A stretch of DNA of 64,000 nt, from assembly GCA_002269645.1 (NCBI GenBank), contig NIVC01000773.1, forward strand, positions 124,001-188,000, written 5' to 3'. This DNA is from Macrostomum lignano. Taxonomy: Eukaryota. This document shows, piece after piece, positions 1,820-47,873 of this stretch. The notes beneath the pieces were generated by a model that worked only from the letters and a program-made list of their open reading frames with translations, did not search any database and had not been told where the DNA came from. Every line of letters begins with the position of its first letter. Positions within the stretch are counted from its first letter, which is position 1. The translations under genes and the position numbers were made by a program.

Positions 1820-4050
1820 ATTTCTTTACCTGAGCTGGGAATTCTCAGGTAGGAAAGAAGCTGAGCGAAAAGTTAAAGAATTTTGGAACCTGCGCTCACT
1901 AACGTAAATTGTTTGGAGGAAATGGCTTTTTAGCTTTTTAGTACTTTTTTTGTAACAGTTGTATTACCTTTTTCATATCGCCCTTCATATTTTAGCGGAA
2001 AAACGTGGCGTTGTTTTAATTTCCCCAGCGAATTCTTTACTAGCGAAAGTGTCTCCAAATTAACCATAGTGTTTGTATGGAATGTGTTTTAATTTTCCCT
2101 TGGAAGTTTTTAGCCGTTGTTATTGTTGGTTTATTGAGTCCTACTGGTAGGCCTTAAGCAAATTTTCAATCACAATACCGTAGAAACATAACAATTAGAT
2201 GGTTCACTCTGGAGCATTTTTGCTCTACATCTCAGGCTGGAATTGAAAAAGCAGAGAAGTTGCCAAAACTTCAGTTAGTGAGCTTTAGTGAGCAGTATAT
2301 TGTATTGTCCAAGTCAATATCGTACTTGCAGATAGGAAAAGTATTAATGGCTGCTACTGAATCTGTGGTGAGTGGACTATCTAGTGTTTAAACTACTCGT
2401 AGTACCTTTATCCTTATCCAAATTTGAAATTAATTTGTGTTAATACATGAATTGCACGTCGCGTGTTATATTTTATGCTTAGAAAAGTAACCCCACACCA
2501 AGACCATTTTTTCCATCTAACAACATCAATATTTATTTTTTTAGCGCCTTAGTGGAGTTTCCAATAAAAATATATACTTTACTCTCTCGATGACTAGGTT
2601 GACTAGATGCTTTACGCTACATTAACACAGCATTGATTGATTCCGCACCGCTCACCACTCAAGTACTCGTAGAAGTAAAAAGCTCATTAGCGAATTAAGG
2701 AATTTTCCTGTTCCTAGCAGCAGCAAATTTTACTTGAGCCATCTCTGGCTTGCGTTATATCATGATAGAACATTCACAACGATATGATTATGTGCCGTCG
2801 TGCCGAGATCTCCCACAAAAAAGACCGAAGACTTCGTGACCTATGCCGCTGAGAAAACTTCACAACAAGCGATTTTTCCCGCACCCTTGCAGCAAGAACC
2901 CATGTTCTATCTAACTATCTATCTATTGTATATACGCTAGTATAAACGTCTGTATTAACGTTTGAAGTTTGAGAAGACCCACTCGTACTCTCATCTGAAG
3001 TTAAACTAGAAAAATCAGGAGGACTGTCGCAGCCGTCACGAAAAAAAGTACTAAACCGATATTTCCACTGTGGACTGGCCTTCGTCAGGGCTGCCAGCAT
3101 ATTCAACAAAATGCAATGAAAACATATGGTCATTGAGGACTAAAAATATGCATTGAGAGTTAATTTATACCCGGTAAAGTTGTGGTGACCCCGTCGCACG
3201 CTGCTCCATTGCTCACTCTATTGATAAAGATTTAATCAATGCCATCAGTGAGGCTAGGCAGTTTAGAGGGCAGAGAATGTCCTTTAGAGAGCGTGTTCGA
3301 GTGTACGCAGCAGCAGTTGCCCTTGTATATGGTTTCAGACAACAGCGCGAATTTCGTGTACAATGTTTGTAGACCTGGGGACAGTGCTATGAAGCTCGGA
3401 TTAGGAGTCAAGTGTCTCCTAACTCTTGATGCAGCAGCGCGTGCTAAGAAGAAGGAGCAAAGTCTGGGAGTTAGAAGTGAATGAGGCCATGTTAGGGGTG
3501 AACTTAAAAAAGTGAGCGTATTATAAAACTAGGACTAAATATTCCACTCCTAACTGCTAAGCCAAGCGTTCAAGAGCCAAGATCAATCAAGAATAAGTCG
3601 TAGAGCATAAGAGACTGCACAAGACTGCAAATCAACTTAGACTTGATTTAGATTGCGTAACCATATTGTTAATTGCTATGACTTCTTCTCTAGAGGAAGA
3701 CAGTAAGACAAGATCAACAATGGTGGATTGTATATAGTAGGTAACCTCGTGAAATAATGGCCAAACGCGAGTGCGCTAACGCACAGCGATGGTTCAATGA
3801 AAAATTTTTTAGCGGTCATTTCAGCCTATTTGAGTTTCGCGCGGCCATTGTTTCAGGCTAGCGAGGGCGGCCATTATTCAGCCCAACTGAAGGGACAGCT
3901 GGGTTGATTTGACCATAGACTATAAGAAACAGTATAGACTTGAACCAAGTGGTGTTTGGAACTTTGCATAAATGATCAAGAATTCAGACTTTAGTTGAAG
4001 TTTGGTCCCTAAAGCTTTCTGCTTTTTAACAGTTATTTTTATTTTTTATT

Positions 4051-4269
4051 ATGGTGCTTATTACCTGGTCCAATCTTCCATTGGACAGCCTAAACGAAGT
4101 GAGTAGCAATGAATTAGAGTTTCTTTCTGAGATAAGTTTAAACGAGCATCAAAATGACACCGGCTTGAGCGAGTTCATCAGCTGGATTGAAAATCCTGCG
4201 GCTGAGTCTGCAGACCTGCCCGAGCTGCCTATCGACGAAGATGCAATCTGCTCAATATTGCCCTTGTAG
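4051..4269 (+). mobile_element. 5'-terminal fragment of a Crypton-like tyrosine recombinase ORF
   Basis: MVLITWSNLPLDSLNEVSSNELEFLSEI...LPELP aligns with the N-terminus of the 31232-32341 ORF (MPLINWKNLPVDSLDGVSSTELDFLSEL...LPEL). CCATAGAC motif upstream at 3913-3920. Confidence 0.7.
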
Positions 4270-4298
4270 TACCTCAGTAGTACCTCAGGTACTGCTTC

Positions 4299-4969
4299 TG
4301 TCGTGCAGGCAGTTGTCGTGCAGGCAGTTGTGCAGTCAGTTGTCGTGCAGGCAGTTGTCGTGTTGTCGTGCAGGCAGTTGTCGTGCAGTCAGTTATCGTG
4401 CAGGCAGTTATCGTGCAGGCAGTTGTCGTGCAGGCAGTTGTCGTGTTGTCGTGCAGGCAGTTGTCGTGCAGGCAGTTGTCGTGCAGGCAGTTGTCGTGTT
4501 GTCGTGCAGGCAGTTGTCGTGTTGTCGTGCAGGCAGTTGTCGTGTTGTCGTGCAGGCAGTTGTCGTGTTGTCGTGCAGGCAGTTGTCGTGTTGTCGTGCA
4601 GGCAGTTGTCGTGTTGTCGTGCAGGCAGTTGTCGTGTTGTCGTGCAGGCAGTTGTCGTGTTGTCGTGCAGGCAGTTGTCGTGCAGGCAGTTGTCGTGTTG
4701 TCGTGCAGGAAGTTGTCGTGTTGTCGTGCAGGCAGTTGTCGTGCAGGCAGTTGTCGTGTTGTCGTGCAGGCAGTTGTCGTGTTGTCGTGCAGGCAGTTGT
4801 CGTGTTGTCGTGCAGGCAGTTGTCGTGCAGGCAGTTGTCGTGCAGGCAGTTGTCGTGTTGTCGTGCAGGCAGTTGTCGTGCAGGCAGTTGTCGTGCAGAC
4901 AGTTGTCGTGCAGGCAGTTGTCGTGCAGGCAGTTGTCGTGCAGGCAGTTGTCGTGCAGACAGTTGTCGT
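4299..4969. repeat. Compound minisatellite of 15-bp (GTTGTCGTGCAGGCA) and 8-bp (GTTGTCGT) units
   Basis: Visible periodicity; all three + frames are open only because the units contain no stops. Confidence 0.95.
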
Positions 4970-5790
4970 AGAAGTAGAACTATCTAAATTTGGGGGATCT
5001 GGAACGAGGTTGCTCTGAAAAAAACTTCCGCCCCCCCCCCCGAAGACAGGTGGCCTAATCTAAGGAAAAATCCTCCTGACTACACATTAGCATACCCGTG
5101 TCCGTCCCAAAAATTTAAATGAGAGAGAGAGAGAGAGAAGGCTGTGACAAAAAATAAATGGGTAAGCTTCACAAACGTCCTCCAGCACAATTTCTGGCAA
5201 AATTGCGCAGGTCTTGCACGGCAGCAAGGCACAAGAAGGGTTAGGAAGCGGGTGGTGACTGGTTCTGTGCAAAGTTCGAGGCATTTTGTCTCCTTCTTTC
5301 TTCCTTACTTTTTGCTAGCATAACAATAGCTTATAGCTAAAAACCTAAAGAACTGTGGAGTGTGGAGGCAGGACAAGGTTAGGTTGTGAGCTCTGAGTTG
5401 CCGCACCGAACTCCGCTCGCACCAGCAAAATCTTAGACGGCTGAGACTGCTAGACGTTCTATCGTTCAGAGGAGACCAGCCGCCAGAGGAGACACAAGTC
5501 TGGCAGCTTGGGGGGGGGGGGGTGGCAGAGGAGACTTCCAGTCCGCTTTGTCTGAGTCGGGTTTGGTTCAGTGCAGCCCGCGCCATTGTGCGTAGCTTCT
5601 GTCTCGCCTAGCCATACACTTTTAAGGCTGCATGCGTAACAAGAAGCTTCTAGAAGCAGCTCTTCGGCTGTCTGCCGAGTTTCTCTCTGGTTTGGACTGA
5701 GCAGTTAACACCTAAACTTCTTGTCGGTCACTCGGTACATTCGAAACTCGACTGGCTGCTCAGCTTGCTGTTTATTCGTGCTGAAAACGG

Positions 5791-6066
<276 letters not shown>

Positions 6067-7060
6067 ATTTTAGCTATGAAATATTTTCATAAAGTTTTAA
6101 TTTTTGTGGCCACAAGATAGATAGATGTAACGCCTCGGGCAACCTTTTGTTGGAGTTTTTCATCTTCTTATTTTTTGCCCCGGCATTGATATTAGACTGC
6201 TTTCAGAAGAGGTGCAATAGAATCTCTTCTCTTTTGAGCTCGTGTACTCGTAGCAGCTCGCTGTGGCCCAGCGCGCGTGAATCTCAGACTGAGGTTGCCG
6301 GCGGGGACAGGCTTGGAAAAGGATTGTAACAGGTGGTATGTCTGGATTTTATGGAGTATTACCGAGCACGGTTGAGGGACAATGGACAGAAACTCTGGCT
6401 GTGGCGAACGTATAAATACAGACGGCGATCTAATTTAGCAAATTTTCTAAGGCGCCTGAAAGAGAATTTTTTTCTATTCGATTCTAGCATCAAAGACAAG
6501 CACTAGGTCTACTGAGATAAAATTATCCAATAGGGTTGTTCTGATACATTATTTTGCTATTTTGGTTTATCTATCAAAGAAACTAAGAAACTCCATCAGG
6601 TTGCCAATTAGGTAAGTCCTGGCTGCACACAGTTGTTTGAGCCTGAGAAAGACTTATTTCTCGGTACATGAAGAGCAACTCCATCATGAAATCTGTCCAA
6701 ACTCACCCTCAATATGCTAGTTCAATCGAAGTCTCCTGCTGTGTATTTATAATGGCCCTCTCTCTTTAAATGAATCTCGTACTCCAGTAAGAGTTGAGTA
6801 GCTTGGGGAATGCCAAGTTTTTGGGCTTTAGAACAGAAATTTCACTTGGAGCCAAAATGAGAACATCGATGGACTGTCTCGGCTTTTCCGTTGGACTGGT
6901 CTGGCAAGTTGCCGATTGCTTCAGGCTCCGCTCCAGAGCCCTCAGTTGACATCTCCTCTATTGGCTTTTGAGGCTCCTGGAGTAAACTTTTGGATAGTGC
7001 TTCTTTTGTTTCAGCCAATGATGTTTGTGTCAATAGGGGACACCAACTATTCATCCGCAG

Positions 7061-10000
7061 GTGAATTCGGTCAAGATGTCGTTCATGCTGGCGGCGCATC
7101 AGCAGGAGGTTGAGAAATGGCTGCAGGACAACCGAGATGACGTGGAGTCAGCCGCCATCGGCTGCACTCACCAGGCGCTGCTGTTTCAGCAAACCAAGCA
7201 GGCGGTCCTGCTGGAGGAGATCCAAGCGCTTGAGAGCAGGCTGGACGAGTCCAACAAGTCAGCGGCAGCGTCCCTCACCAAGCTGAAGGCAATGGAGAGT
7301 CAGATTGGCGTAAACCAGCAGGCGCTGACTTACCTTCGACAGGTGACGTCGCTTGAGACGGCATTCGTGTCCACGGGTCAGAAAGTGATGGAGAAGGCAC
7401 TGCAGATGTCCAAAGTTACTGACGGAGTCGTTCTGGAAGCCAAGAAGGTGAGAAAAGAGCCTTCATTTTATTGACAGTACATAAACGAGTCAAGGACAAC
7501 TAAAGCAACGTCTATACAGGACGCTGCACTCGAAATCTATGGAAAATGTTTTGAAGGCCACTTTTTGCCGAAAAATACACTACGGAGATAGGAAGTTTTA
7601 ATTTTTTAAGCTTCAGCTTCAGCTTCGTTCAGAAAATTAGAATTTATGTTATTTTTCATTCTGGTACAACTGCTCATGTCCTGTGCCTAAAAATCATAAA
7701 AATGGCACGGCTCGGCTCATTGGTTTTATTAATCTATTTTGGCATTCTTAGCTGACTGTGTAACAATATGTGTATCAGGGGTGATAAAATAGATTCATGT
7801 ACGACTCGTAACCAAAGATTCGATAACATAGAATCGTAATTTCCTAAAACTTCCTAAAACTCTTCCTAAAATCCTAAAACTTCCTATCTTCGTAGTGTAT
7901 TTTTTGACGAAAAGTGGCCTTCAAAACATTATCCATAGATTTCGAGTGTTGCGTCCTTCTACTCTAGTAGTCCTTTGAACGAGTATGCTTGAGCAATGAG
8001 CAGCTATTAAATTTGAACCCAACACATATCAATAAGACATAAGTAGTTTTTACCGGCGACATTTCACATCGTGCCAGACAAAAACTTTATATAGTAAATT
8101 AAAATGCAATTTTTTTGTTTGAAGTTGGAGTTAGAAGAGCGTAAAATCTGGAATTGAGTGTAATAGTGTAAGCAGCAAGAAGCTGAACTTTTAGGTGTAT
8201 ATGCATCAAACCTCGAAAATATTTCCTCCCAGGAGCTGTCGGCCGAGGTCCACGGCACCTGGTGCTGGGTGAGCCAGCTGGCCGACCTGAACCGGCTCCA
8301 CACCCGCAACGCCGCGGACTACCAGGCCTTCCATCACAGCGCCTACGAGCTCAACGCCATGCTGAACAGCCGAGCCAGCAGCAGCAGCGCCGCCATTGCC
8401 GCCATTCCCGCCAACGGGATGCTGGGCTCCATCAAGCGCATAAACACCGTGCTCACTGTAAGTAACCTCTTGTCAGTTTCAATATGGGCTTGAAATACTC
8501 AAATCGCACACTTCAAAAGTAAAAGCCTCCTCGAACCTCTGCAGGACAACTTGGCCCAGTTCAACCGGCTGTGGCAGCTGTCAGTCGACCTGATGCAGCG
8601 CAGCCGAGCTGTGGTGCCGCTGCACCTGCGTTTCAGCACTGACGCCATCCCGTTCGCGGGCAAGAACGTGTTCAAGTTCGATGACGGCGAGGTAAGTGCC
8701 AACTGTATTGCAGAGTGAATTGCATATTTGATAGCGCGCTCGCCCCATCATATTCGGACACCTGCGAGTGGAAGTTGCGCCTGAAAACCTCTGCACACTA
8801 AACTGGCTACCTTACGAGTAGCGAGGAGAGAAAATTAATTATGAAATTTAGAATACCGATAAATGGCGATAATAAATATGAGTGTCTTAGAATGTGTGTA
8901 CGGTTGTGACCCTGAATTTTAAGGGACCGGACTATGTTTGCTGGTGTAGTCCTGGCTTGTCTGTAGGGACTGGTCCTATTGCTATCTTATTCTTCTGCCT
9001 CTCTGACGATGGCACCAAGCGTCTATACTTCTAATCAACTAAATAAGTCGAAGGTTCGGTAACTTTCTCTCGATCTTCAACCCTCAACGCGGATGTTTAT
9101 TTCTATTCCTGATGGTTGCAATTTCAATAGATAATGAGCATGCAAATGTTGGAAGCAATTTAGTGGAAAGAAAAAGGGCTACTTATCTATACTGGTGTAC
9201 CTCGATCTTGACGTCTCTAGATGGTCTCTTTGTTAGATCGGGATGGAGTCTCGGCTCGATTCAGATGAAGTTGTTTCCTTGACGGTTTTTTTTAGTCTTT
9301 TAGTGACGTTGGATGAGAACTCTGGATGGAGGGCGGAGTAGGAGTAGAGGAGTAGCTGGAGCAAAAGGAGGAGCAAGAGAAGGCGGGAAAAAGGAGGCGG
9401 GAGCTTTATTTTCACTGAACGCTAGTATTAGTAGTATATATATGATTTCTATAACGCCATATATATATGGTGTTGGCTTCCCGCAATAGGATCTTTATTG
9501 CCGCAGAAGCATGCGCTGTACTTTCCAGATAGAAAAACTTTCAAGGTTCGCATTAGACTCAAAAATAGCATTGGGCATAACATGTATAAATTAAGATCAC
9601 TGCACTAGTTTTTCTCCTATACATTAAAATCCAGGCCTTCTGAGCTGCGCATTTGCCAGTATTTAACTAAACATTTACACAAAAACTACTACCGTACCGT
9701 ACCGACCTCTCCCCCCACAGACGGTCCTGGAGCCGGGAGAGCAGGTGACTGTCATCGACAACTCTCAGTCCTACAGGTGGACGGTGAGGCGCTCGGACGG
9801 AAGCGAGGTCGAAGTGCCCAGCACCTGCATCTGGCTGCCGCCGGCCGATCCGCAGGCAGTGGAGCTCGCTATCGGGTTTGTGGGGCTTTTGACAGAACTG
9901 GCATTTATCTCATTGTCTTTTTTATTTTGTCAAAGCCTCATGTTTATTTATTTATGAAAGTGGCTTATATAGTAAAAGATAAACATCACAAGTGACGATA

Positions 10001-13000
10001 AGGAAAAACATCTCTGCACATTTTGCCACTCCCTGGCTCTTTGGGAATCGAATTTCTTCCGTTTACAGGCTGAGAAGAAAGCTTCTGAACACCTGGTCTC
10101 AGGTTCTGAACCAACTGCGTCAATGGAGTGCCGAGTTCTTTGATTCCTATCTGAGCCGCATGATCCACAACCCAGTGGTGAGTAATATTACACTTTTTAT
10201 ACCTACGTGTAAAGTTTGCGGCCTCTTTTCATCGTTTTTTGAATACCAAAACACAGGTAGATGTTGTTATCGGAATAAATCGTTTTTAAAGTTTAATTCT
10301 CAGCCAAATAGTTGAACTTCCTTCATCAGATGATCAGCTCAAAAATCAAAGACGGATCTCTCGCGTTCTTCGAGAGGTTGCGCCTGTCCAGCCGCACCTT
10401 CTTGGGCGTCAACGATCAGCAGGCAGAGCGCATTGACAGGTCCATTGGCAAGGTGGTTGACAGGATTACAATAACCGGTGCGTGTTGGATAAATTTGCTG
10501 GGTTTTGCTTTAAACATTGCAGCCAGTTCAGTTTAGACTTCTGTGATAGAGCTATATTTTTCGGGACTAGAATCTGACAACATTTCAAATTGATATTGTT
10601 TGTTTTAATTCACCAAAGCAGACATGCAGACCTTTGATACGATTTTTTAGATGGCCCGATGGACTCTTTAGTTGAGAGCGAGCTAGTCGTCCTGCAGACG
10701 TGCCTGATGAAGCTGGAAGAGCACCTGAACCAGTGGCGCCATTGCTCAAGAGAAGCTCTCGAAGCCGAAAATCAGGAGCGAAGTCAGACTGACCTATCTA
10801 AGGAATCCTCGGAGGTCCTGGCACGCATTGAACTGCTTTCGTAAGTCTAATGGACTCAAAAAAATTTTTCATGTATTTTAAACCTAAAAAAATATTAGGT
10901 ACTCAGGATTTTTATTTAGGAATAGAAAAATGTCGACCAAGGTATGGCATGACTCGTCAGTTGTGTTGTATACCAATGGATGAAGCAATAGAAAGGATCG
11001 CTGATCTGAAAGCGAGTCTATGGCCAATACAGGGCCAGCACCCTGGGCTGACCAACAATGGAATCGCAGAATATTTTGCTGAGCTTGGTGTCCCAAAATC
11101 AACCATTTATGGAATTCTGGATCGCTACTCAGCAACTGGAGAAGATTCTGTGCTACGCAAGGAGGGGTCAGGACGACCAGCTACCAAGGTCACTGCCACT
11201 TTGATGGAGAAGATGTCAAATGATGCCAGGACGGGTCTGTCCCAGCGCGAAATTGCAAGCAAATATGACATCAGCCAGCCGTGCGTCAACGAGATTCTCA
11301 AGAAGCAGGGACTGAGTGCATACAAGAAAGAAAAAGTGCCATTTGTGTCGTTGGAGCAGAAAGAGCGCCAGCGTGTGAAGATTGACAGGCTCTACCGTGC
11401 TGTGCTGGCAGGAGATGACGGCGGACTGGACATTGTCATGGACGATGAATCGTACTTGTCTCTGTCATCCTATGTCATCCCTGGTAACAGGTTCTATTAT
11501 GCAACAGCTCGAGGTGATGCACCTGATGAGGTCTGGTGTTCAAATTTGAGGCCAAAGTCTTGGTCTGGCTGCTGGCCATCAGCAAGAAGGGCATGTCCAA
11601 GGTCTTCTTTTGCGACGGCAGCTCAATGAACAAAGAGATCTACATAAGAGAGTGCATTCACAAGCGTCTATTGCCATTTATTAAGGAGCAGCATGCTGAC
11701 CGCAACTACCTGTTCTGGCCTGACCTGGTGAGCTGTCACTATGCTCGTGACGTCATTGACACATTTGAAGAGGAAGGTGTCAATTTTGTCAGCAAGGAGC
11801 TCAATCCTCCCAATGTACCACAGCTGCGACCAATTGAAAACTTCTGGGGGATGTTGAAGCTGGGGGGTGTCACAATTGGACGGCGGACAGTCTGGAACAG
11901 CTGGAAAATCGCATTCGCTACTGCCTCCGCCAGGTGGATCTGCACTGTGTACAGGAGATGATGACCAATGTCAAGTCCGGGATTCACCGAGCTCGGGCTA
12001 ATGGTGTCGGAGCCGTTTGGCAATGAGCCAGACAATCCCTTATATACTGAACTAAATCCAAGTTAAAAGACACGCGTTCAATTTGTTAATGTTGTCTTAC
12101 TAAAACAAATAAAAATGTCCAAATTTTTACCAATCACCCAGTACTTCCTAAAAGTTGGGATATTCCCCTCATGGATTTCATTGGCTGCTGGAATTTAACA
12201 ATAGACCCCCCTAAGTTCTTACTGGCTGAAGCTTGTACGCGAGGGAAATTCCAAAGTCACGATTAACGTTAGACATTAATAACTGCTTTTTTCCTCTGGG
12301 CCACGACGGCTTAAGGGATTTAGAACAAGAGAAAAAGTTATCTACGAGTAGTATGTTAGTGTTACAGCCTAGCATGCGCGTTAATCGTGAATTCCCCGCA
12401 TACAAGCTTCAGCCATTAAGAACTTAGGGGGACTATTATTCAATTCCGGCAGCCAATGAAATTAATTGGGGGGGAAATCCCAATTTTCAGGAAGTCTTGG
12501 CCATAGACTCGCTTTCAGATGAGCGATTCTTTCTATTCCTTCATCCATGGTTGTACCCCCCCCCGGGCTGCGTAGCTGGGAGACACCCAGGTCCCGCCTA
12601 TTCCTGTCCCTAACGCTGCAAGAGTTCACAGCGGCCTCGAGCTGGCGAAAGTTCACCGGCCCGACCTCTGGGTGCTGCGAGAGTTCACAGTAAAACTTCC
12701 GGCTGGCAAAAGTTCGCTTGTCGGCCCCTGAACACTGCGAGAGTTCACAGTATAGCTCGATCCCCGCGCGGCACCCCGGAAGGAAATGAGACTCACACCT
12801 GCAGTTCGATCCAGCTCCAACAACATGCGGTATACCCCGAACTGAACGTTACGTGTGTGTATTGATATTAACTGCACTGCCGTCAGCGGGACAAGGGGGG
12901 GGGCGGGACGGGGCGGGGGGCGCGCATTAAATAGCAAGGCAAAAGGGGGAGGAGGGTAAACAGACAGACAATAAGCAAGTACAAACCACCCTGCGGCCAG

Positions 13001-16000
13001 CCAATCACAAGCCGCCAGCCGGGGGAGGGGTGGAGCAAATTGAGCCGGCCCGCACACGAGACCGGGGGCCTGGGCAGGCCGAGGCCAGACTAGGGAGAGA
13101 CTTAAGCCCCCAAACCCCAGCCCGACCGGCCGGCACAACCCAGCGCGATGGGGGGAGAGAAAGAGAGAGAGAGAGAAAAGGGCCGGGAGGGTGAAGCCCT
13201 CGCAGACGCAGCACGGCACAACAGTTATTGGCTTTTAACTGGTTTATCAAGCATAAAGCAATGCTTTCTGGAGAATTTCTTAGTCGTAAGGTCCAGTTAG
13301 TTTCATTGATACGACAGAACTTAATTACATAAATAGCTCGAGCACTAATCATAAATTATTTTGCAATGGTTATTGGAGGACTACTTTCATAAGAACCCCC
13401 ACAGCAACCCCAATTCAACAGGTATGCATACCGAAAATGCATAAAAATACTTCTAGAAAATCAAAGATTCTTTCGTGAAAGTCATCACTGTACTTTAAAA
13501 GAATAGAGGAAACAGAGCCAAATTCTGCCCTACTATGAAATAGAAGCCCGCAAACAAACCTAAACGTGGCATGAATTTGTTGAACTTGCAGACAGCTGCA
13601 AAAGGAGTCACAGTCTCAGTTCCGTGACCTGCAGCGAAGCATTTCTAATTGGAGGCTTCAAGATGTGGCGTCGAAGTTCCAAGTCACCAAGGTAATTAAT
13701 ATTTAAACTGCATGCTGTAGCTTCATTGGCTTTATTCAAGTCAGCTAATCGGTATGTTTTACTTCGATCCCACAGATTTCGCGACAGCCGCTGTTCTACG
13801 ACAAATCATCGCTTTCCGTAATGGACAGCGTCACAAGAGCGTCGGGGAAATCGGAAGAGAGACAGACAGCAGAGTGGCGGCTGATTGGAACAATCCAAGG
13901 GAGAGCAGAAGGAAACTCAGCGGTGAATGTGACAGCAAGCGGTTGTCACGCATCTACAAATCAATATCACATTGGATTCAAATCTGCAGAAGAAGTAACA
14001 AGCTCGAGAGCTGCCGTATACAGGTCTGAAGAGAGACCAAAATCAGAAAGTAAAAAGATTCAAGTAGTTTCTAGCGGCTGTCATAAAGAAATTTTGCCAA
14101 GTAAAGAGCCAGACACTTCGTCGCAGGACTTCCAAGCGTTGGTGCTGAAGTACGTTGAGCAGCACAAGTCGGAATTCTTCGCCATATTTGCTACATGGAG
14201 CGATTTTCAAACAGAAATTCGTCGCTACGTACGCGAGCATGCTTGGGAGTTTTCTGATATCTTCTCCTGGAGCGGGTTCAGCGACCAAGTTCGAAAGCAC
14301 GTTTTGGAGCACAAAGAGGAATTCATTGCGCTGCTTGGCCTAAACAAAGAAGTGAACGTAGAGCGACGCATTACACTTGAAAGGCCACCAGTGCAAGTGT
14401 CGCAAACTCAGTGCTGGAGAGAGATCAAAAAAAGTGAATCTGCTGTCAGTTTTGAACAAAGACAACAAAAACCTGCAATTTCAGTCACAGAAGCCTACAG
14501 AGAACAAGCCGATAAGAAGACTGAACTGAAGAGTGCAGGATGCTTCATAGAAAAAGTCTTCGTCAGTGCCAAAGTTCAGAAAACAACCCCAGAGCTAATA
14601 ATATTTTCTCACGGGGCATTCAAAGAACGCACATTTTCTACCGCAAGCATCAAAGTCGAAAACAAGTCGAACACAACCGGAAGTGGGTGCTACTCAGAGT
14701 GGCAATTATCGGAAAAATCGGTTTACTTCAAAGAGACTATAAAACAAAATGTAACTTCCTGCCATTCCGAAACACAGTATCAGGACTCTCGAGCCAAATT
14801 CGATATTTCAAGTCCAAAAATAAGCGCAAGCGGCTGTTTCAAGCAAATCACGCTCGAGCCGGCTTCCGTGACGTGCGATTGGAGGCCGAAATATGACAAC
14901 TCCGGCTGCTACTACGAGACAAGTACCAAGCCAGTAGCGCAAAGTTCATCTCACCGGCGCCAACGCTTACTGCAAGCGGCTGTTTCAAGCAAATCACGCT
15001 CGAGCCGGCTTCCGTGACGTGCGATTGGAAGCCGAAATATGACAACTCCGGCTGCTACTACGAGACAAGTTACCAAGCCAGTAGCGCAAAGTTCATCTTA
15101 CCGGCGCCAACGCTTACTGCAAGCGGCTGTTTCAAGCAAATCACGCTCGAGCCGGCTTCCGTGACGTGCGATTGGAGCCGAAATATGACAACTCCGGCTG
15201 CTACTACGAGACAAGTTACCAAGCCAGTAGCGCAAAGTTCATCTTACCGGCGCCAACGCTTACTGCAAGCGGCTGTTTCAAGCAAATCACGCTCGAGCCG
15301 GCTTCCGTGACGTGCGATTGGAGGCCGAAATATGACAACTCCGGCTGCTACTACGAGACAAGTTACCAAGCCAGTAGCGCAAAGTTCATCTTACCGGCGC
15401 CAACGCTTACCGCAAGCGGCTGTTTCAAGCAAATCACGCTCGAGCCGGCTTCCGTGACGTGCGATTGGAGGCCGAAATATGACAACTCCGGCTGCTACTA
15501 CGAGACAAGTTACCAAGCCAGTAGCGCAAAGTTCATCTTACCGGCGCCAACGCTTACTGCAAGCGGCTGTTTCAAGCAAATCACGCTCGAGCCGGCTTCC
15601 GTGACGTGCGATTGGAGGCCGAAATATGACAACTCCGGCTGCTACTACGAGACAAGTTACCAAGCCAGTAGCGCAAAGTTCATCTTACCGGCGCCAACGC
15701 TTACTGCAAGCGGCTGTTTCAAGCAAATCACGCTCGAGCCGGCTTCCGTGACGTGCGATTGGAGGCCGAAATATGACAACTCCGGCTGCTACTACGAGAC
15801 AAGTTACCAAGCCAGTAGCGCAAAGTTCATCTTACCGGCGCCAACGCTTACTGCAAGCGGCTGTTTCAAGCAAATCACGCTCGAGCCGGCTTCCGTGACG
15901 TGCGATTGGAGGCCGAAATATGACAACTCCGGCTGCTACTACGAGACAAGTTACCAAGCCAGTAGCGCAAAGTTCATCTTACCGGCGCCAACGCTTACCG

Positions 16001-19000
16001 CAAGCGGCTGTTTCAAGCAAATCACGCTCGAGCCGGCTTCCGTGACGTGCGATTGGAGGCCGAAATATGACAACTCCGGCTGCTACTACGAGACAAGTTA
16101 CCAAGCCAGTAGCGCAAAGTTCATCTTACCGGCGCCAACGCTTACGCAAGCGGCTGTTTCAAGCAAATCACGCTCGAGCCGGCTTCCGTGACGTGCGATT
16201 GGAGGCCGAAATATGACAACTCCGGCTGCTACTACGAGACAAGTTACCAAGCCAGTAGCGCAAAGTTCATCTTACCGGCGCCAACGCTTACCGCAAGCGG
16301 CTGTTTCAAGCAAATCACGCTCGAGCCGGCTTCCGTGACGTGCGATTGGAGGCCGAAATATGACAACTCCGGCTGCTACTACGAGACAAGTTACCAAGCC
16401 AGTAGCGCAAAGTTCATCTTACCGGCGCCAACGCTTACTGCAAGCGGCTGTTTCAAGCAAATCACGCTCGAGCCGGCTTCCGTGACGTGCGATTGGAGGC
16501 CGAAATATGACAACTCCGGCTGCTACTACGAGACAAGTTACCAAGCCAGTAGCGCAAAGTTCATCTTACCGGCGCCAACGCTTACTGCAAGCGGCTGTTT
16601 CAAGCAAATCACGCTCGAGCCGGCTTCCGTGACGTGCGATTGGAGCCGAAATATGACAACTCCGGCTGCTACTACGAGACAAGTTACCAAGCCAGTAGCG
16701 CAAAGTTCATCTTACCGGCGCCAACGCTTACTGCAAGCGGCTGTTTCAAGCAAATCACGCTCGAGCCGGCTTCCGTGACGTGCGATTGGAGGCCGAAATA
16801 TGACAACTCCGGCTGCTACTACGAGACAAGTTACCAAGCCAGTAGCGCAAAGTTCATCTTACCGGCGCCAACGCTTACCGCAAGCGGCTGTTTCAAGCAA
16901 ATCACGCTCGAGCCGGCTTCCGTGACGTGCGATTGGAGGCCGAAATATGACAACTCCGGCTGCTACTACGAGACAAGTTACCAAGCCAGTAGCGCAAAGT
17001 TCATCTTACCGGCGCCAACGCTTACGCAAGCGGCTGTTTCAAGCAAATCACGCTCGAGCCGGCTTCCGTGACGTGCGATTGGAGGCCGAAATATGACAAC
17101 TCCGGCTGCTACTACGAGACAAGTTACCAAGCCAGTAGCGCAAAGTTCATCTTACCGGCGCCAACGCTTACCGCAAGCGGCTGTTTCAAGCAAATCACGC
17201 TCGAGCCGGCTTCCGTGACGTGCGATTGGAGGCCGAAATATGACAACTCCGGCTGCTACTACGAGACAAGTTACCAAGCCAGTAGCGCAAAGTTCATCTT
17301 ACCGGCGCCAACGCTTACCGCAAGCGGCTGTTTCAAGCAAATCACGCTCGAGCCGGCTTCCGTGACGTGCGATTGGAGGCCGAAATATGACAACTCCGGC
17401 TGCTACTACGAGACAAGTTACCAAGCCAGTAGCGCAAAGTTCATCTTACCGGCGCCAACGCTTACTGCAAGCGGCTGTTTCAAGCAAATCACGCTCGAGC
17501 CGGCTTCCGTGACGTGCGATTGGAGGCCGAAATATGACAACTCCGGCTGCTACTACGAGACAAGTTACCAAGCCAGTAGCGCAAAGTTCATCTTACCGGC
17601 GCCAACGCTTACCGCAAGCGGCTGTTTCAAGCAAATCACGCTCGAGCCGGCTTCCGTGACGTGCGATTGGAGGCCGAAATATGACAACTCCGGCTGCTAC
17701 TACGAGACAAGTTACCAAGCCAGTAGCGCAAAGTTCATCTTACCGGCGCCAACGCTTACCGCAAGCGGCTGTTTCAAGCAAATCACGCTCGAGCCGGCTT
17801 CCGTGACGTGCGATTGGAGGCCGAAATATGACAACTCCGGCTGCTACTACGAGACAAGTTACCAAGCCAGTAGCGCAAAGTTCATCTTACCGGCGCCAAC
17901 GCTTACTGCAAGCGGCTGTTTCAAGCAAATCACGCTCGAGCCGGCTTCCGTGACGTGCGATTGGAGGCCGAAATATGACAACTCCGGCTGCTACTACGAG
18001 ACAAGTTACCAAGCCAGTAGCGCAAAGTTCATCTTACCGGCGCCAACGCTTACTGCAAGCGGCTGTTTCAAGCAAATCACGCTCGAGCCGGCTTCCGTGA
18101 CGTGCGATTGGAGGCCGAAATATGACAACTCCGGCTGCTACTACGAGACAAGTTACCAAGCCAGTAGCGCAAAGTTCATCTTACCGGCGCCAACGCTTAC
18201 CGCAAGCGGCTGTTTCAAGCAAATCACGCTCGAGCCGGCTTCCGTGACGTGCGATTGGAGGCCGAAATATGACAACTCCGGCTGCTACTACGAGACAAGT
18301 TACCAAGCCAGTAGCGCAAAGTTCATCTTACCGGCGCCAACGCTTACCGCAAGCGGCTGTTTCAAGCAAATCACGCTCGAGCCGGCTTCCGTGACGTGCG
18401 ATTGGAGGCCGAAATATGACAACTCCGGCTGCTACTACGAGACAAGTTACCAAGCCAGTAGCGCAAAGTTCATCTTACCGGCGCCAACGCTTACTGCAAG
18501 CGGCTGTTTCAAGCAAATCACGCTCGAGCCGGCTTCCGTGACGTGCGATTGGAGGCCGAAATATGACAACTCCGGCTGCTACTACGAGACAAGTTACCAA
18601 GCCAGTAGCGCAAAGTTCATCTTACCGGCGCCAACGCTTACTGCAAGCGGCTGTTTCAAGCAAATCACGCTCGAGCCGGCTTCCGTGACGTGCGATTGGA
18701 GGCCGAAATATGACAACTCCGGCTGCTACTACGAGACAAGTTACCAAGCCAGTAGCGCAAAGTTCATCTTACCGGCGCCAACGCTTACTGCAAGCGGCTG
18801 TTTCAAGCAAATCACGCTCGAGCCGGCTTCCGTGACGTGCGATTGGAGGCCGAAATATGACAACTCCGGCTGCTACTACGAGACAAGTTACCAAGCCAGT
18901 AGCGCAAAGTTCATCTTACCGGCGCCAACGCTTACCGCAAGCGGCTGTTTCAAGCAAATCACGCTCGAGCCGGCTTCCGTGACGTGCGATTGGAGGCCGA

Positions 19001-22000
19001 AATATGACAACTCCGGCTGCTACTACGAGACAAGTTACCAAGCCAGTAGCGCAAAGTTCATCTTACCGGCGCCAACGCTTACTGCAAGCGGCTGTTTCAA
19101 GCAAATCACGCTCGAGCCGGCTTCCGTGACGTGCGATTGGAGGCCGAAATATGACAACTCCGGCTGCTACTACGAGACAAGTTACCAAGCCAGTAGCGCA
19201 AAGTTCATCTTACCGGCGCCAACGCTTACCGCAAGCGGCTGTTTCAAGCAAATCACGCTCGAGCCGGCTTCCGTGACGTGCGATTGGAGGCCGAAATATG
19301 ACAACTCCGGCTGCTACTACGAGACAAGTTACCAAGCCAGTAGCGCAAAGTTCATCTTACCGGCGCCAACGCTTACCGCAAGCGGCTGTTTCAAGCAAAT
19401 CACGCTCGAGCCGGCTTCCGTGACGTGCGATTGGAGGCCGAAATATGACAACTCCGGCTGCTACTACGAGACAAGTTACCAAGCCAGTAGCGCAAAGTTC
19501 ATCTTACCGGCGCCAACGCTTACTGCAAGCGGCTGTTTCAAGCAAATCACGCTCGAGCCGGCTTCCGTGACGTGCGATTGGAGGCCGAAATATGACAACT
19601 CCGGCTGCTACTACGAGACAAGTTACCAAGCCAGTAGCGCAAAGTTCATCTTACCGGCGCCAACGCTTACCGCAAGCGGCTGTTTCAAGCAAATCACGCT
19701 CGAGCCGGCTTCCGTGACGTGCGATTGGAGGCCGAAATATGACAACTCCGGCTGCTACTACGAGACAAGTTACCAAGCCAGTAGCGCAAAGTTCATCTTA
19801 CCGGCGCCAACGCTTACCGCAAGCGGCTGTTTCAAGCAAATCACGCTCGAGCCGGCTTCCGTGACGTGCGATTGGAGGCCGAAATATGACAACTCCGGCT
19901 GCTACTACGAGACAAGTTACCAAGCCAGTAGCGCAAAGTTCATCTTACCGGCGCCAACGCTTACCGCAAGCGGCTGTTTCAAGCAAATCACGCTCGAGCC
20001 GGCTTCCGTGACGTGCGATTGGAGGCCGAAATATGACAACTCCGGCTGCTACTACGAGACAAGTTACCAAGCCAGTAGCGCAAAGTTCATCTTACCGGCG
20101 CCAACGCTTACTGCAAGCGGCTGTTTCAAGCAAATCACGCTCGAGCCGGCTTCCGTGACGTGCGATTGGAGGCCGAAATATGACAACTCCGGCTGCTACT
20201 ACGAGACAAGTTACCAAGCCAGTAGCGCAAAGTTCATCTTACCGGCGCCAACGCTTACTGCAAGCGGCTGTTTCAAGCAAATCACGCTCGAGCCGGCTTC
20301 CGTGACGTGCGATTGGAGGCCGAAATATGACAACTCCGGCTGCTACTACGAGACAAGTTACCAAGCCAGTAGCGCAAAGTTCATCTTACCGGCGCCAACG
20401 CTTACCGCAAGCGGCTGTTTCAAGCAAATCACGCTCGAGCCGGCTTCCGTGACGTGCGATTGGAGGCCGAAATATGACAACTCCGGCTGCTACTACGAGA
20501 CAAGTTACCAAGCCAGTAGCGCAAAGTTCATCTTACCGGCGCCAACGCTTACCGCAAGCGGCTGTTTCAAGCAAATCACGCTCGAGCCGGCTTCCGTGAC
20601 GTGCGATTGGAGGCCGAAATATGACAACTCCGGCTGCTACTACGAGACAAGTTACCAAGCCAGTAGCGCAAAGTTCATCTTACCGGCGCCAACGCTTACC
20701 GCAAGCGGCTGTTTCAAGCAAATCACGCTCGAGCCGGCTTCCGTGACGTGCGATTGGAGGCCGAAATATGACAACTCCGGCTGCTACTACGAGACAAGTT
20801 ACCAAGCCAGTAGCGCAAAGTTCATCTTACCGGCGCCAACGCTTACTGCAAGCGGCTGTTTCAAGCAAATCACGCTCGAGCCGGCTTCCGTGACGTGCGA
20901 TTGGAGGCCGAAATATGACAACTCCGGCTGCTACTACGAGACAAGTTACCAAGCCAGTAGCGCAAAGTTCATCTTACCGGCGCCAACGCTTACTGCAAGC
21001 GGCTGTTTCAAGCAAATCACGCTCGAGCCGGCTTCCGTGACGTGCGATTGGAGGCCGAAATATGACAACTCCGGCTGCTACTACGAGACAAGTTACCAAG
21101 CCAGTAGCGCAAAGTTCATCTTACCGGCGCCAACGCTTACCGCAAGCGGCTGTTTCAAGCAAATCACGCTCGAGCCGGCTTCCGTGACGTGCGATTGGAG
21201 GCCGAAATATGACAACTCCGGCTGCTACTACGAGACAAGTTACCAAGCCAGTAGCGCAAAGTTCATCTTACCGGCGCCAACGCTTACCGCAAGCGGCTGT
21301 TTCAAGCAATCATCTTACCAAAACTCTGCTGCTATATTTGTGCCAAAAGTCGATGTAACTGCGTCGGGCTGCCTTAAAGAGCTTTCATTTGATAATTCGT
21401 CGGTGACAGCGACCGCAAATGTGACAGTCGCTGCCTCTGGATTCTTTAGTGAGTCCTCTTTCTCATCTTCGGTCGTCAAATTTACTGATGTTTCAACAAA
21501 AGTTTCTGCTTCTGGTTGCTTCCATGAAGAATCCTCTAAGTCTGAGATGGCTTCAAGTGGATGTTTCAAGGAAATTCAGAGGAGCACATCGTCTGCAAGA
21601 TTTCTCTTCCAACTGCCAACTACGGCATCCGGAACGTTCAACGAGCGAGTCGCTGTTGAAGAGTTAAAAATAAGCACACCGCCTTCTATGCCAGTCATAC
21701 GAAGCATGCCAATCGTTGATTCGGGCTGCGAGTTCGTTGGATCGACTGCTGAACTCATTTCAGAAAGTCGCGCTGACGAAAGACAAGTTCAGCAGCAGCA
21801 CAGTAGCAGCATGTAAGTTTCGTGTATGATGAGTTCCTATTGAATACTTAAATTCTAAGTTTCTTTTTCGTTTCCGAACGTTCCTCACAACACGCGAGAT
21901 TTTGCATTTTAGATATGCACTAAGCGTCGGTCAGAGCAGTTCTGCCAGTAGGGCGACCAGGACCTCCGAGGCACAGACTGATTTGGACTACAAGTCCGCA

Positions 22001-22900
22001 TTGTGGAACATGTTTGTATTGAAGAACGGTCGCGTTGACATCAACCTCTCCTTCATAGTTTCGTATTTCGGAGTCGAATCTTTCGCTCGCGAGTACATGC
22101 TACTTCGCGAATTTCGAAACGTTGCAACGCAAGTTGGTGAAGGAGGGGAAGTCGGATTCGCGACGGCGTCACCCAGAAGCGTCAATCTCGTTCAGAGCAG
22201 GTCGTTTGAGTCGCAGTCGAGTGCTTCTCGTGTCTATGGATCTGGTGTTGTCAACATTGGTGGATCTAGCGGTGGGATGTTAGACCTTTCTAATACAAAC
22301 ACCAGCAGGATCTCGACTATCCAGAGACAGTCATCCGGAACATCTGGAGTCGTGAGGACTAATGGAAGCAACGAGTTTACGTCATTTGGCTCACGAACAG
22401 AATCGGTTCCTGGTGATATCCAGGGAGTTGCATCTGGAGATACTAGATCAAGTGTAGTCAGCATTGGCGGATCAGACGGAGAAATGTTGGACCTGTCCAG
22501 TTCGTTCGCCACCAGGCTTCCATCAGTCCAGAGACAAATAGAATTTAATAATTTTTCTGGTGCACATGCCGATGTTTCCGACCTGTCCGGTGTGATCAGT
22601 TCTGCAAGCGGTACGTCTGCTATTCAGCGGCAGTCGTCAGGCCGTTCAGGTGAAAGGATCGTGACGCAGAGCAGCGGCAGCGGCATCGTCAATATGTCTG
22701 AGACGGTCAGCTCCGGTTCGCGAGGCTTCGCAGTGTCTGGGGACGGCCTGTCCAGCGTTTACCGATCGGTCTCTGGAATCGACGGCTCTGATGGCAGTGT
22801 GCAGGCAGCCCTGGCCTCCATGGTGAGCGTAGGCGAAAGTAACAGCGGCATTACTCGACTCTCCACCCTGGAGGGTCGCATGCTGAACCTGTCCGACTAG
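7061..22900 (+). CDS. Giant (~3,500 aa) plakin-family protein: spectrin-repeat/SH3 plakin domain + Cys-containing 49-aa repeat block + Ser/Gly-rich tail
   Basis: Exons 7061-7447, 8233-8457, 8545-8691, 9721-9875, 10069-10177, 10330-10477, 10651-10840, 13592-13691, 13776-21812, 21913-22900. All junctions are GT-AG and phase-compatible. Plakin signatures: WCWVSQLADLNRLHTRNAADYQAF and SRAVVPLHLR...TVLEPGEQVTVIDNSQSYRWTVRRSDGSEVEVPSTCIWLPPADPQAVE (plakin SH3). The big exon has five -1 frameshifts; adding 5 nt gives 8042 = 3n+2, matching the phase-2 intron 21813-21912. The start is uncertain (ATG 7076 or an upstream exon). Confidence 0.8.
7517..7958. mobile_element. MITE with ~80-bp terminal inverted repeats, in a plakin intron
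   Basis: CAGGACGCTGCACTCGAAATCTATGGAAAATGTTTTGAAGGCCAC...GATAGGAAGTTTTA at 7517-7598 is the reverse complement (few mismatches) of 7875-7958. Confidence 0.8.
11040..12143 (+). mobile_element. 5'-truncated, frameshifted IS630-Tc1-mariner transposase of the DD37E type
   Basis: HTH region, IVMDDESY, FWPDLVSCH...PPNVPQLRPIENFW with 37 residues between the second D and E. Split across ORFs 10850-11629 and 11536-11961. Probable right end ...CCAATCACCCAGTA at 12143. Confidence 0.9.
12200..12437. mobile_element. Small MITE-like foldback element
   Basis: AATAGACCCCCCTAAGTTCTTACTGGCTGAAGCTTGTACGCG at left mirrors ...GCATACAAGCTTCAGCCATTAAGAACTTAGGGGGACTATT at right. Confidence 0.75.
14826..21310 (+). 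repeat. 147-bp coding tandem repeat, 44 copies (ASGCFKQITLEPASVTCDWRPKYDNSGCYYETSYQASSAKFILPAPTLT)
   Basis: Unit counted at 147 nt; ~6.5 kb span; lies inside the spliced exon 13776-21812. Confidence 0.97.
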
Positions 22901-24299: not shown

Positions 24300-26872
24300 A
24301 TGTCGTCGCTGTCAAAGAAGAGCGCCTACAATAGCCCGGGCGAGAGGGAGCGGCACCGAAGAGAACTGTCTTCTCTGCTAGACATTGCTGGCGTGGAATA
24401 CCGGTTCGTGCTGTTTCGCGGCGTTCCCGTGTGCCCTTTTCCCGGAGTAAAGAGGCGCGTGCAGGTAACCGAATGTTTTTCAGATTGATGCCAACATGCC
24501 GCGTCGTCTGCCCCCAGTCTAGTGAAAATGGCGTGTCGTGTACCGTATTTTACTTATAGGACACATTTTATCATAGACAGGATGGATGTACACAACCTGG
24601 CGCACTTTAAGCGACATTGTCACACAACCGGCGAGAGGCATTGCTGCCCATTCCGCCGACTCCCCTGAGCAGGCACACAAGCGCGCGGATACGTACGCAG
24701 TCATACGCACAGGCACACACTCACATAGGATTGTACATCGGCCCTAACTTTATTTATCGTTAGGCATGTACACTTCACTGTGCATTGGGGGTTGGCTTTC
24801 AAGGGCGTTAACTGCACGAGCAGAGCCAAGCCGAGATTCCAATTTAGTCCCAAATTAAGAGTTTTAGGCCTAAGATTTTAGGCCTAAGATTTTAGGCCTA
24901 AAATGAACATGCAATGACAGCGTGATTCTGATAGCTATTGTGCCTAAATGTAGGAGATGCAGATATCCATCAGACTCACAGGTTTGGAGTGAGGCTCTTG
25001 GGTTTTGGGTGAGACTCTTAGGTTTGCAGTTATTGATTTTTCAGTAAGACTCATAGCTTTGCAAATTTTGTTAAAAGTCAAAACTGACCTTGACTTTGTA
25101 GTGCATATTCTTTTTGATTAAACAACTTTGCAGACCTACTGGGATAGCTTCCGGCCGAGACAGTCAGATGTGTGGGTGTGCGCATTCGTCAAGTCCGGCA
25201 CACACTGGGTGAACGAGATAGCTCACATGCTGCTCAGGGTAAGCACCAGGTCCGCGTGTCGTGTGAATTTTACTGGGTAAAAGTGTCCTTCTTTTTTAGC
25301 TGTCCATGTCTGATGCTCCTCTGAACTGAACTCACTATTCAGGGCAGCACGGAGGCACCCAAAGCCAAGGAGGAGTTCATGCTGGAGCGAGTCGACTGCG
25401 AAGTGCTGCAGAATCTGCCCAGCCCGAGGCTGATGAACACCCACCTGCACTTCAGCCAGCTACCCGAGCAGATCCTCTCCGCCAGGAAAGGAAAGATCAT
25501 CTTCGTCACCAGAGACGTCCGCGATGTGGCGGTTTCGTTGTTTCACCACCAGCGAACCCGAGCTGCTGACAACCTGACTCGATACGACACCACCTGGCAG
25601 GCCCATCTCGACACATTCTGCAAGGGACTTTCGCAAAACGGTTCCTGGTTTGATTACATCAAGGTTTGCCATTACTGTTTGGTAGCGCACGAATGCTTAA
25701 AGTCACATTCGTGCGTTGTAGGACCGGTTTCTGAGTTCGTTTCCTTCGCTTGGCATGACTGCATGACTTTCTGTTGAAATGACCTATGACGCACGTTTGG
25801 GACTCTCACTACTGTGTCTCTGTTTATGATTTCTTGTACCAGTATTAGAGCCAAATAACTGAGTCAACTGACTTTTCCTGATGATACAATCACAAGGGTC
25901 TTTCTAGTGTGGAGACATTTCCGTTGAACATTACGGTCCTGCTTCCTAATGGCTGAGACTGAGGTTCAGCATTTCCTTGGTTGGTAATGCATTAAAAACT
26001 GGATAGAAACTTCATAGCCGAAAAAATAGATCACTACAGTGTGACACCAGGTTTCACCGAAAGGAAAGTAAGCATTGCTTTTAGTTAAGTTGCCGACACC
26101 AACATCAACTCTCAAATTTGAAGGGTTGGCACGAAGGATGTCTCAAACAACAGCCAGACAATGTGCTGCACCTCACTTACGAAGGCATGCTGGCCGACCA
26201 TCGAGGAGCCATCGACAGTTTGGCCAGCTTCCTCCTGACCCCGGAGCAGCGCTGCCGGCTCGACGAGGCCTTCATGAAACGGGTGCAACAGCTCACCGAG
26301 TTTGAGCACATGCGCCAAGCTCACTCTGGCAAGACGGCAATAGAGATCTATCGGAATGGGAAGGTGGTTAACATGTCTAATCCTAGCTTATATAGGATTT
26401 TAAGAAATTCAAAGTTGAGTCGAAATTCGGAAAACATCTAAAACTCCATCATCTCTAGATTTATTGACCCGTCTTCCTTCATCTCTAGATTCCTTGACAC
26501 CGTCTACCATCATCTCTAGATTCCTTGACACCGTCTCCCATCATCTCTAGACTCCTTGACACCGTCTCCCATCATCTCTAGATTCCTTGACACCGTCTCC
26601 CATCACCTCTAGACTGCTTGACAGCATGAATCCTTGGCGAAAGCAATCAAATTGTGCTACAAATTTTCTCAAATAAATTTCGAGTATCTTCTCTACCGAA
26701 TTTCCCGTCAAAGTTTAAGAAAGTTCGAATAAATATTTTTTAGACCGGCAGCTGGCGAGGCCAGTTCTCCGAGCTGGACTTGTTCGACCTTCGCGCCAGG
26801 CTGTTCGACCCGCTCAGCCCCGAGGACCAGAGCCTGTTTCTGCGCTACTCAAGCATGACCAGCTGGGCCTGA
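24300..26872 (+). CDS. Cytosolic sulfotransferase (Sulfotransfer_1 family), 5 exons, ~319 aa
   Basis: Exons 24300-24464, 25134-25238, 25343-25663, 26124-26363, 26744-26872, all phase 0 GT-AG. Motifs DVWVCAFVKSGTHW (5'-PSB loop), SPRLMNTHL, IIFVTRDVRDVAVSLF (3'-PB), LHLTYEGM, RNGKTGSWRGQF. Confidence 0.9.
26449..26625. repeat. 31-bp minisatellite (CATCATCTCTAGATTCCTTGACACCGTCTCC), ~5 copies, in sulfotransferase intron 4
   Basis: Direct inspection. Confidence 0.9.

Positions 26873-28037: not shown

Positions 28038-41875
<13,838 letters not shown>

Positions 41876-47508: not shown

Positions 47509-47549
<41 letters not shown>

Positions 47550-47622: not shown

Positions 47623-47653
<31 letters not shown>

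Positions 47654-47840: not shown

Positions 47841-47873
<33 letters not shown>

Follow-up and report, generated by a model that had tools for sequence, protein, structure and literature searches.

A flatworm gene that probably encodes a plakin-family protein with a giant exon of 24/25-residue repeats

To our knowledge, all plakins and spectraplakins described so far carry α-helical rods and plakin repeats. Spectraplakins (Shot, VAB-10, MACF1 and dystonin) are marked by a CH actin-binding domain, a spectrin rod, and EF-hand and GAR domains. Here we analyze a gene at positions 7076–22900 on the plus strand of a 64,000-nt stretch of Macrostomum lignano DNA (contig NIVC01000773.1 of assembly Mlig_3_7, positions 124001–188000; hereafter the window), in which a plakin-type N-terminus precedes a long block of tandem repeats. 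We hold with moderate confidence that this is a 10-exon coding gene whose product of ~3,490 residues comprises a short plakin domain, a helical unit, ~100 units of 24 or 25 residues and a Ser/Gly/Arg-rich tail, and that the protein is a cytoplasmic structural linker. We class it as a variant within the plakin family.

The N-terminus supports the family assignment. The spliced 482 residues ahead of the giant exon match Pfam SH3_10 with 41.9 bits (cut-off 22.8; E = 1.1e-10), and a profile of three sequences searched against the PDB retrieves desmoplakin (3r6n, 5e-13, query residues 103–321) and plectin (3pe0, 1e-12), with the matches extending across the spectrin-SH3-spectrin core. By these matches, the segment is a short plakin domain, as an initial annotation of the window had claimed; of the two Pfam families expected there, SH3_10 was found, but Spectrin stayed below its cut-off (E = 0.011, 16.7 bits against 29.9). 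The 482 residues leave room for ~4 spectrin-like repeats, where a full plakin domain has six to nine in ~900 residues. We place the probable start at ATG 7076 rather than at GTG 7061, as first proposed; this Met is the common start of three paralogues and immediately precedes the first spectrin-like repeat. Other expected absences were borne out: the N-terminus has no hydrophobic leader on inspection, and Pfam finds no CH, plakin-repeat, EF-hand or GAR domain in the protein, no plakin repeat in its paralogues, and thus none of the spectraplakin hallmarks. Pfam likewise detects no coiled-coil rod, although no dedicated coiled-coil predictor was run. We also considered an actin-binding exon upstream, in 1790–7075, and rejected it: only satellite-derived open stretches lie there, and the paralogues share the start Met.

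The database protein P0001 guided the gene model, and each exon boundary was checked separately. All nine introns begin with GT and end with AG, and the frame is continuous across them. The plakin domain opens with a spectrin-like repeat from exon 1 (7076–7447; tblastn of P0001, AG/GT model). Exons 2 (8233–8457) and 3 (8545–8691) together encode the spectrin repeat that bears the SH3 insert, by alignment with plectin (3pe0) and desmoplakin (3r6n). Positions 8617–8691 encode the insert's first half, and the second half of this plakin-type SH3 lies in exon 4 (9721–9875), which matches SH3_10 on its own (E = 1.3e-9). Distal spectrin-like repeats are encoded by exons 5 (10069–10177), 6 (10330–10477) and 7 (10651–10840), each a 100% tblastn match to P0001. 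Exon 8 (13592–13691) contains NWRLQDVASKFQVTK, a motif common to all paralogues, at the end of the conserved N-terminal region.

Exon 9 (13776–21812) runs from the acceptor at 13776 to a donor after 21812 (AT/GTAAGT). Its first 350 residues (13776–14824) comprise four degenerate SGC units and one Trp- and Phe-rich helical unit of ~80 residues. The array follows at 14825–21309, where Tandem Repeats Finder reports a period of 147 bp, 44.1 copies and 99% matches. Its consensus, ASGCFKQITLEPASVTCDWRPKYDNSGCYYETSYQASSAKFILPAPTLT, is a 49-residue unit with three Cys and two SGC[FY] half-units, the SGC motifs lying 24 or 25 residues apart, in agreement with the 44 units initially described. Seven degenerate 24/25-residue SG[CFT][FLE] units (21288–21812) close the exon. 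Altogether the protein holds ~100 copies of the 24/25-residue unit (T-x-S-G-[C/V]-[F/Y]-x-E...), 88 of them within the 44 near-identical double units. Exon 10 (21913–22900, 329 codons, ending ...GRMLNLSD and TAG) encodes the anticipated Ser/Gly-rich tail (S 21.5%, G 12.1%), with two to three degenerate copies of a 69-residue GEMLDLS/GSR unit found across the family. Exons 9 and 10 are free of stops once five bases are restored, which gives a product of 3,491 residues with 148 Cys. A protein model from the older, independent ML2 assembly (P0002, 501 residues) runs from the last 1.3 units through the degenerate units and the exon 9/10 splice to the tail.

The gene belongs to a family with at least three tandem paralogues on NIVC01000773.1 and at least one unlinked copy. 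On a fetched database locus that matches window 1–25017 at 100% (L001), the upstream paralogue (L001 9980–19925, reaching window position 1790) has a plakin domain and an intact open frame of 2,089 residues, with ~10 helical units of 83 residues followed by seventeen 69-residue GEMLDLS/GSR tail units. Its 3' end, 207-bp (69-residue) tail repeats closing with ...GRMRNIVD and a stop, fills window 1–1790 on the plus strand and is not part of the 7076–22900 gene, which itself combines a single helical unit with the SGC block and with two or three tail units. Between the two genes, the ratio of nonsynonymous to synonymous substitution rates (dN/dS) is 0.32 (dS 0.62, 646 codons); by this estimate the N-terminal half is under purifying selection. 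The helical unit (13776–14824; L001 13656–16300) spans ~83 residues in three sub-repeats of ~27 residues (EF..IF..W..F..QVR.YV). It draws spurious Pfam matches (VQ, Mrr_cat and others), and a spurious 'Restriction endonuclease' label also appears in a published proteomics table. In a third paralogue (L001 4100–7000), the exon-8 motif occurs together with helical repeats and a single unit each of the SGC-like and tail types; the giant exon is spread over several frames, as in a pseudogene or after further assembly indels.

The unlinked copy, Mlig024865, lies on a fetched locus of NIVC01000090.1 (L002). Its plakin domain is 38% identical over 465 residues to that of the 7076–22900 gene, and it carries degenerate SG[V/C][F/Y]RE units and a 72-bp array of ~195 copies encoding TGSGCFRETSYNESRVRFKEEIAV (L002 20187–34197). 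The array reaches to ~250 bp from the end of the fetched locus, so that the 3' end of the gene lies beyond view; another called gene begins at L002 33299 and runs past the locus end. The 49-residue unit aligns in register with two 24-residue units of Mlig024865 (33% identity, one gap, BLASTP E = 1e-18), which makes the repeat older than the divergence of these paralogues. As judged from this alignment, the 49-residue unit is a recently amplified double unit of a repeat that is ancestral within the family.

Searches for relatives elsewhere were extensive. Both an exhaustive HMMER search, which covered 1.84 billion representative proteins, and word-indexed searches gave only M. lignano paralogues as accepted homologues. 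The rejected candidates are bacterial repeat proteins. Those with Ig/cadherin-like surface repeats are P0005, P0007–P0009, P0011 and P0012; P0006 and P0010 are unrelated proteins of other types. P0003, a metagenomic protein of 939 residues with 53-residue units, reached E = 9e-20 against the array in the library search; we judge this match to be chance similarity amplified by repetition because its pairwise E-value is only 7e-6, the alignment is gapped, the period differs and only VTC[D/E]WR is shared. No known domain was assigned to the repeat by Pfam, by PDB sequence search or by Foldseek against the PDB; Pfam matches to Astrovir_pp_1 and DUF5972 were discarded as spurious and inflated by repetition, with no stretch passing alone. 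Together with the HMMER result, these searches support the initial view that the repeat belongs to no known family. What we have is a lineage-restricted, uncharacterized family. Its members, four or more M. lignano genes, are already in databases as truncated hypothetical proteins. The proposal of a new protein class overstates this, and the protein is not demonstrably such a class.

The gene is real but mis-annotated. P0001 (BOX15_Mlig010347g1, 895 residues) contains a plakin domain and 1.6 repeat units, and its gene spans L001 10001–33123 (window −8106 to 15017). The model is chimeric: it begins with exons of the upstream paralogue (L001 10001–11400) and from there jumps ~14 kb into the 7076–22900 gene. 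It terminates at the first frameshift of the array and leaves ~2,600 downstream codons unannotated. The locus thus exemplifies how arrays of identical repeats break gene models, both by truncation at an indel and by fusion to a neighboring paralogue. In the literature searched, no paper connects Macrostomum or flatworms with plakin, plectin or these gene identifiers, and the supplements of the M. lignano papers examined do not contain those identifiers.

Structure prediction and periodicity both suggest a β-rich repeat. AlphaFold2 run without an alignment on eleven Mlig024865 units gave an all-β model with two strands per unit (local confidence score, pLDDT, 86.6; predicted template modeling score 0.85; five models 71–87), and for five units of the 7076–22900 gene one of five models was all-β (pLDDT 73). 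The hydrophobic moment of the repeat units is enriched at 160–180° (z 2 to 3.7) and depleted at 100° (z about −3), with a weaker signal in the degenerate units. The Foldseek lists, though not significant, consist almost wholly of β-helices, solenoids and functional amyloids. These predictions make a β-rich repeat likely; a solenoid rod is a hypothesis. The original guess of a β-solenoid, for which an AlphaFold check had been proposed, agrees with the AlphaFold2 models, but AlphaFold2 is biased towards that fold for perfect repeats, and the models may be an artefact.

Evidence for translation comes from a sister protein. Mass spectrometry of amputated tails (Wunderer et al., 2019, Dataset S3; PMC6410801) includes RNA1310_1399.1_2, a protein of 1,621 residues whose best human match is envoplakin (9e-8). 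Its peptides TETAPVGVQGIVSEATGSR, AVNIGGSDGEMLDLSGSR and AVNIGGSDGEILNLFGSR are exact tail repeats of window 1–1790, that is, of the upstream paralogue, indicating that the family is translated, repeats included. If the SGC repeat is translated as well, FILPAPTLTASGCFK, YDNSGCYYETSYQASSAK and QITLEPASVTCDWRPK are the peptides expected of the 7076–22900 protein. Anchor cells are known to need a special skeleton of intermediate filaments (PMC4016567). Detection of the sister protein in tails would suit a function in anchor cells, in the epidermis or in the copulatory apparatus without demonstrating one.

Several observations weigh against our reading of the gene. The assembled frame of exon 9 is broken five times, leaving six separate open stretches, and all five deletions lie in the first 15 of the 44 units (14825–17025, the first ~2.2 kb), a clustering that uniform random errors poorly predict ((15/44)^5 ~ 0.005). 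Two of the deletion types each recur twice, and the paralogue furthest upstream (L001 4100–7000) is frameshifted too. Window 15018–22900 carries no NCBI annotation, and no transcript or peptide of the gene or of any SGC repeat was found among the entries listed in PMC6410801, which is weak evidence. Protein searches found no orthologue outside M. lignano. For the fold, the other four of the five models of the gene's own units were poor (pLDDT 31–36), AlphaFold2 is known to over-predict β-solenoids for perfect repeats (PMC11795689), and Foldseek found no significant structural neighbor in the PDB (best E = 0.013 for the first model and 0.096 for the second). Junction docking and filament binding are proposed solely from the plakin domains of other animals.

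Two rival readings concern the array and its frameshifts. The array could be a non-coding minisatellite inside the gene, spliced out or located past an earlier polyadenylation site and open by chance. Tandem repeats make up 15% of the M. lignano genome (PMC5730564), the window contains more than 25 other arrays, and 59% of shuffled 147-bp units have at least one open frame, so an open frame by itself does not show that the array is coding. Its surroundings are more informative. Degenerate SGC-type units in the frame of the array flank it on both sides, within long unique stretches whose freedom from stops has a chance probability of 1e-7 (13776–14824) or of 3e-4 and 3e-7. The frame connects two canonical splice sites, the acceptor at 13776 and the donor at 21812, and is in phase with the last exon, the consensus is open in just one of six frames, with the minus strand and the alternative frames all closed, and the repeat has protein-level homology to that of a paralogue whose N-terminus is just 38% identical. 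Across the 44 units, the single frequent polymorphism (C/T at unit position 1) is synonymous, ACC/ACT in the third base of a Thr codon. A minisatellite is thus very unlikely, and we conclude from frame and homology that the array is a coding part of the gene. Real frameshifts are a more serious, though still unlikely, alternative, under which the gene would be a decaying pseudogene, or would make only the 895-residue protein and leave the remaining 6 kb of the array as untranslated satellite. In the sequence as given, the frame is broken by five 1-bp deletions: TT to T at 14923/4, GG to G at 15176/7 and 16644/5, and CC to C at 16144/5 and 17024/5. The 2,156-residue repeat block exists only after their repair, although 16993–21813 is one open run of 1607 residues. 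The 8-kb exon proposed initially accordingly keeps its acceptor at 13776, donor at 21812 and in-frame last exon, but not an intact reading frame, the five deletions having been overlooked in that annotation. Besides the clustering at the 5' end of the array, real disablement would fit the recurrence of two deletion types, as with variants spread by unequal crossing-over, and the frameshifts of the L001 4100–7000 paralogue, which lie where the sequence is less repetitive; gene loss would also be tolerated in a genome that is recently polyploid and has redundant copies (PMC5730564). Against it, five indels accompany only two singleton substitutions, the inverse of a normal mutation spectrum. All five fall in two-base runs, with neither insertions nor stop-creating substitutions. 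No damage is seen further downstream, in the 29 distal units, the degenerate units at the 3' end, the splice junction or the 329-codon tail, and P0002 reads through the last units and the tail in an independent assembly. The Mlig024865 array of the same assembly shows the same deletion bias: 28 of 169 unit spacings are off-frame, and spacings of 71 bp outnumber those of 73 bp by 14 to 4. The 895-residue version has a further difficulty, as its stop at 15015 lies upstream of an intron and its mRNA would be a target of nonsense-mediated decay. The genome was assembled from PacBio reads with Canu and polished with short reads by Pilon (PMC5730564), which could not fix the array because short reads cannot be placed uniquely in identical units. 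Simple decay, like uniform error, fails to explain the placement of the five deletions. As far as the sequence itself can tell, they are most likely unpolished PacBio assembly errors, which we consider appreciably more probable than real disablement.

If the repeat block is translated, its 132 Cys (148 in the whole protein) raise the question of whether the protein is cross-linked. The initial annotation had suggested disulfide or metal cross-linking, and such a scleroprotein could harden the intracellular stylet, the anchor-cell skeleton or sperm bristles. The number of cysteines would suit it, as would the hard parts of free-living flatworms, which are reportedly formed intracellularly. A paralogue protein was found in amputated tails, which include the adhesive organs and the stylet, and anchor cells rely on a dedicated intermediate-filament skeleton (PMC4016567). 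However, the tail proteome is not tissue-specific, and its peptides belong to a paralogue that lacks SGC repeats. The cysteines themselves point elsewhere. In an alignment of 17 representative half-units only Gly is invariant; the motif Cys is Val in 5 of the 17 and Phe or Thr in others, which rules out Cys as the defining feature of the repeat. Because Val freely takes its place in homologous units, the motif Cys looks like a small, buried residue rather than a reactive site for cross-linking, which weakens the suggestion. Mlig024865 has one Cys per 24 residues, the His/Cys spacing is not typical of metal sites, and the cytoplasm is reducing. We regard a cross-linkable scleroprotein as quite unlikely and keep to a cytoplasmic linker of the plakin family.

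Such a linker would work as follows. The protein would reside in the cytoplasm, where its plakin domain may dock it at a membrane junction or plaque. Where canonical plakins have a rod of coiled coil or spectrin repeats, the repeat block would form a long, stiff, β-rich rod, of ~40 nm if each half-unit makes one 0.48-nm coil of a β-solenoid. The tail may contact filaments or neighboring molecules. A bolder version, which we put forward tentatively and think unlikely to hold in full, is an undescribed cytolinker of the Macrostomum lineage in which a giant cytoplasmic β-solenoid rod (~40 nm; at least 90 nm in Mlig024865) replaces α-helical rods behind the plakin domain and which builds or anchors intracellular load-bearing or hardened structures of the tail, for example the stylet or the skeleton of the anchor cells. 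If true, the plakin domain would prove to be a portable anchor, with junction docking kept and a β-type repeat rod swapped in, and the protein would be a rare case of a giant intracellular β-repeat structural protein in an animal. Adhesive organs and epidermis are well studied in M. lignano, and the hypothesis is directly testable there because the species is a model for transgenesis and RNA interference.

The window has several other features. Intron 7 of the gene (10841–13591) contains a Tc1/mariner-like transposase remnant in sense orientation, spread over two frames (10832–11958; Pfam HTH_23, HTH_28, HTH_Tnp_Tc3_2 and DDE_3), and another pair of Tc1-like open frames is found at 32889–33771. 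Micro- and minisatellites are very dense at 4299–6066 and 24800–59800 (more than 25 arrays), and many generate long spurious open frames; examples are (CTAT)69 at 5791–6066, 44 bp x20 at 37073–37964, 30 bp x36 at 44777–45844, (CTGT)168 at 47508–48183 and 56 bp x18 at 51984–52994. Five further stretches look like ordinary genes of the neighborhood. The one at 25379–25777 looks like a sulfotransferase gene, with support from Pfam for its product. From their translations by eye, we take 43049–43606 to encode an ARF-like small GTPase, 46992–47441 (minus strand) a fragment of an ATG4-like protease, 51357–51755 (minus strand) an exon of a ribosomal protein L9-like gene and 61177–62709 (minus strand) a cytochrome P450.

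Among described proteins, the plakins that lack an actin-binding domain (desmoplakin, envoplakin, periplakin and epithelial BPAG1) come closest. They too have an SH3 between spectrin repeats and no CH domain, and they continue into a long central module and a tail containing Gly, Ser and Arg, although the likeness of the tails is one of composition only. The plakin domains of desmoplakin and plectin are the best PDB matches, and envoplakin is the best human match of the sister paralogue. By contrast, the M. lignano plakin domain has only ~480 residues (~4 repeats) and is ~25% identical, and the center of the protein is a β-type 24/25-residue repeat, with neither a coiled-coil rod nor plakin repeats by Pfam. 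The plakin-repeat isoform of Drosophila Shot and C. elegans VAB-10A resemble the gene in having one very large repeat-encoding exon in an invertebrate plakin-domain gene (PMC2173965). However, their giant exons encode canonical plakin repeats, and the genes also have CH domains, a spectrin rod, EF-hands and GAR; in M. lignano, the family is spread over several small paralogous genes and is not a single giant locus with many isoforms.

Likeness to β-solenoid and functional-amyloid proteins (curli CsgA, FapC, bactofilin, β-helix enzymes and tailspikes) lies in the predicted 24-residue repeat with two strands in each unit. They come from bacteria or viruses, most of them are extracellular, and they lack sequence homology to the repeat; Foldseek E-values are 0.01 or worse and template modeling scores are mostly 0.1–0.4. 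A parallel in gene organization is offered by the S100-fused-type proteins of the vertebrate epidermal differentiation complex (filaggrin, trichohyalin), a paralogue cluster with small N-terminal exons and a giant, fast-evolving repeat exon. The M. lignano genes likewise combine tandem paralogues, a conserved N-terminus and one giant exon of paralogue-specific repeats, but they have an unrelated N-terminal domain and belong to another phylum, and the M. lignano gene has no evidence of a role in an epidermal barrier. The nearest relatives are the paralogues themselves, which share with the 7076–22900 gene the N-terminal architecture, the start position, the exon-8 motif and the giant repeat exon. 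A homologous 24-residue SGCF unit occurs in Mlig024865, and the helical unit and the 69-residue tail unit occur in the upstream genes. The paralogues differ in the module that is amplified: helical and tail units in the upstream gene, single 24-residue units in Mlig024865 and, in the 7076–22900 gene, a 49-residue double unit with two extra Cys. The family may thus vary the mechanical part of its proteins, with different repeat modules expanded in different paralogues.

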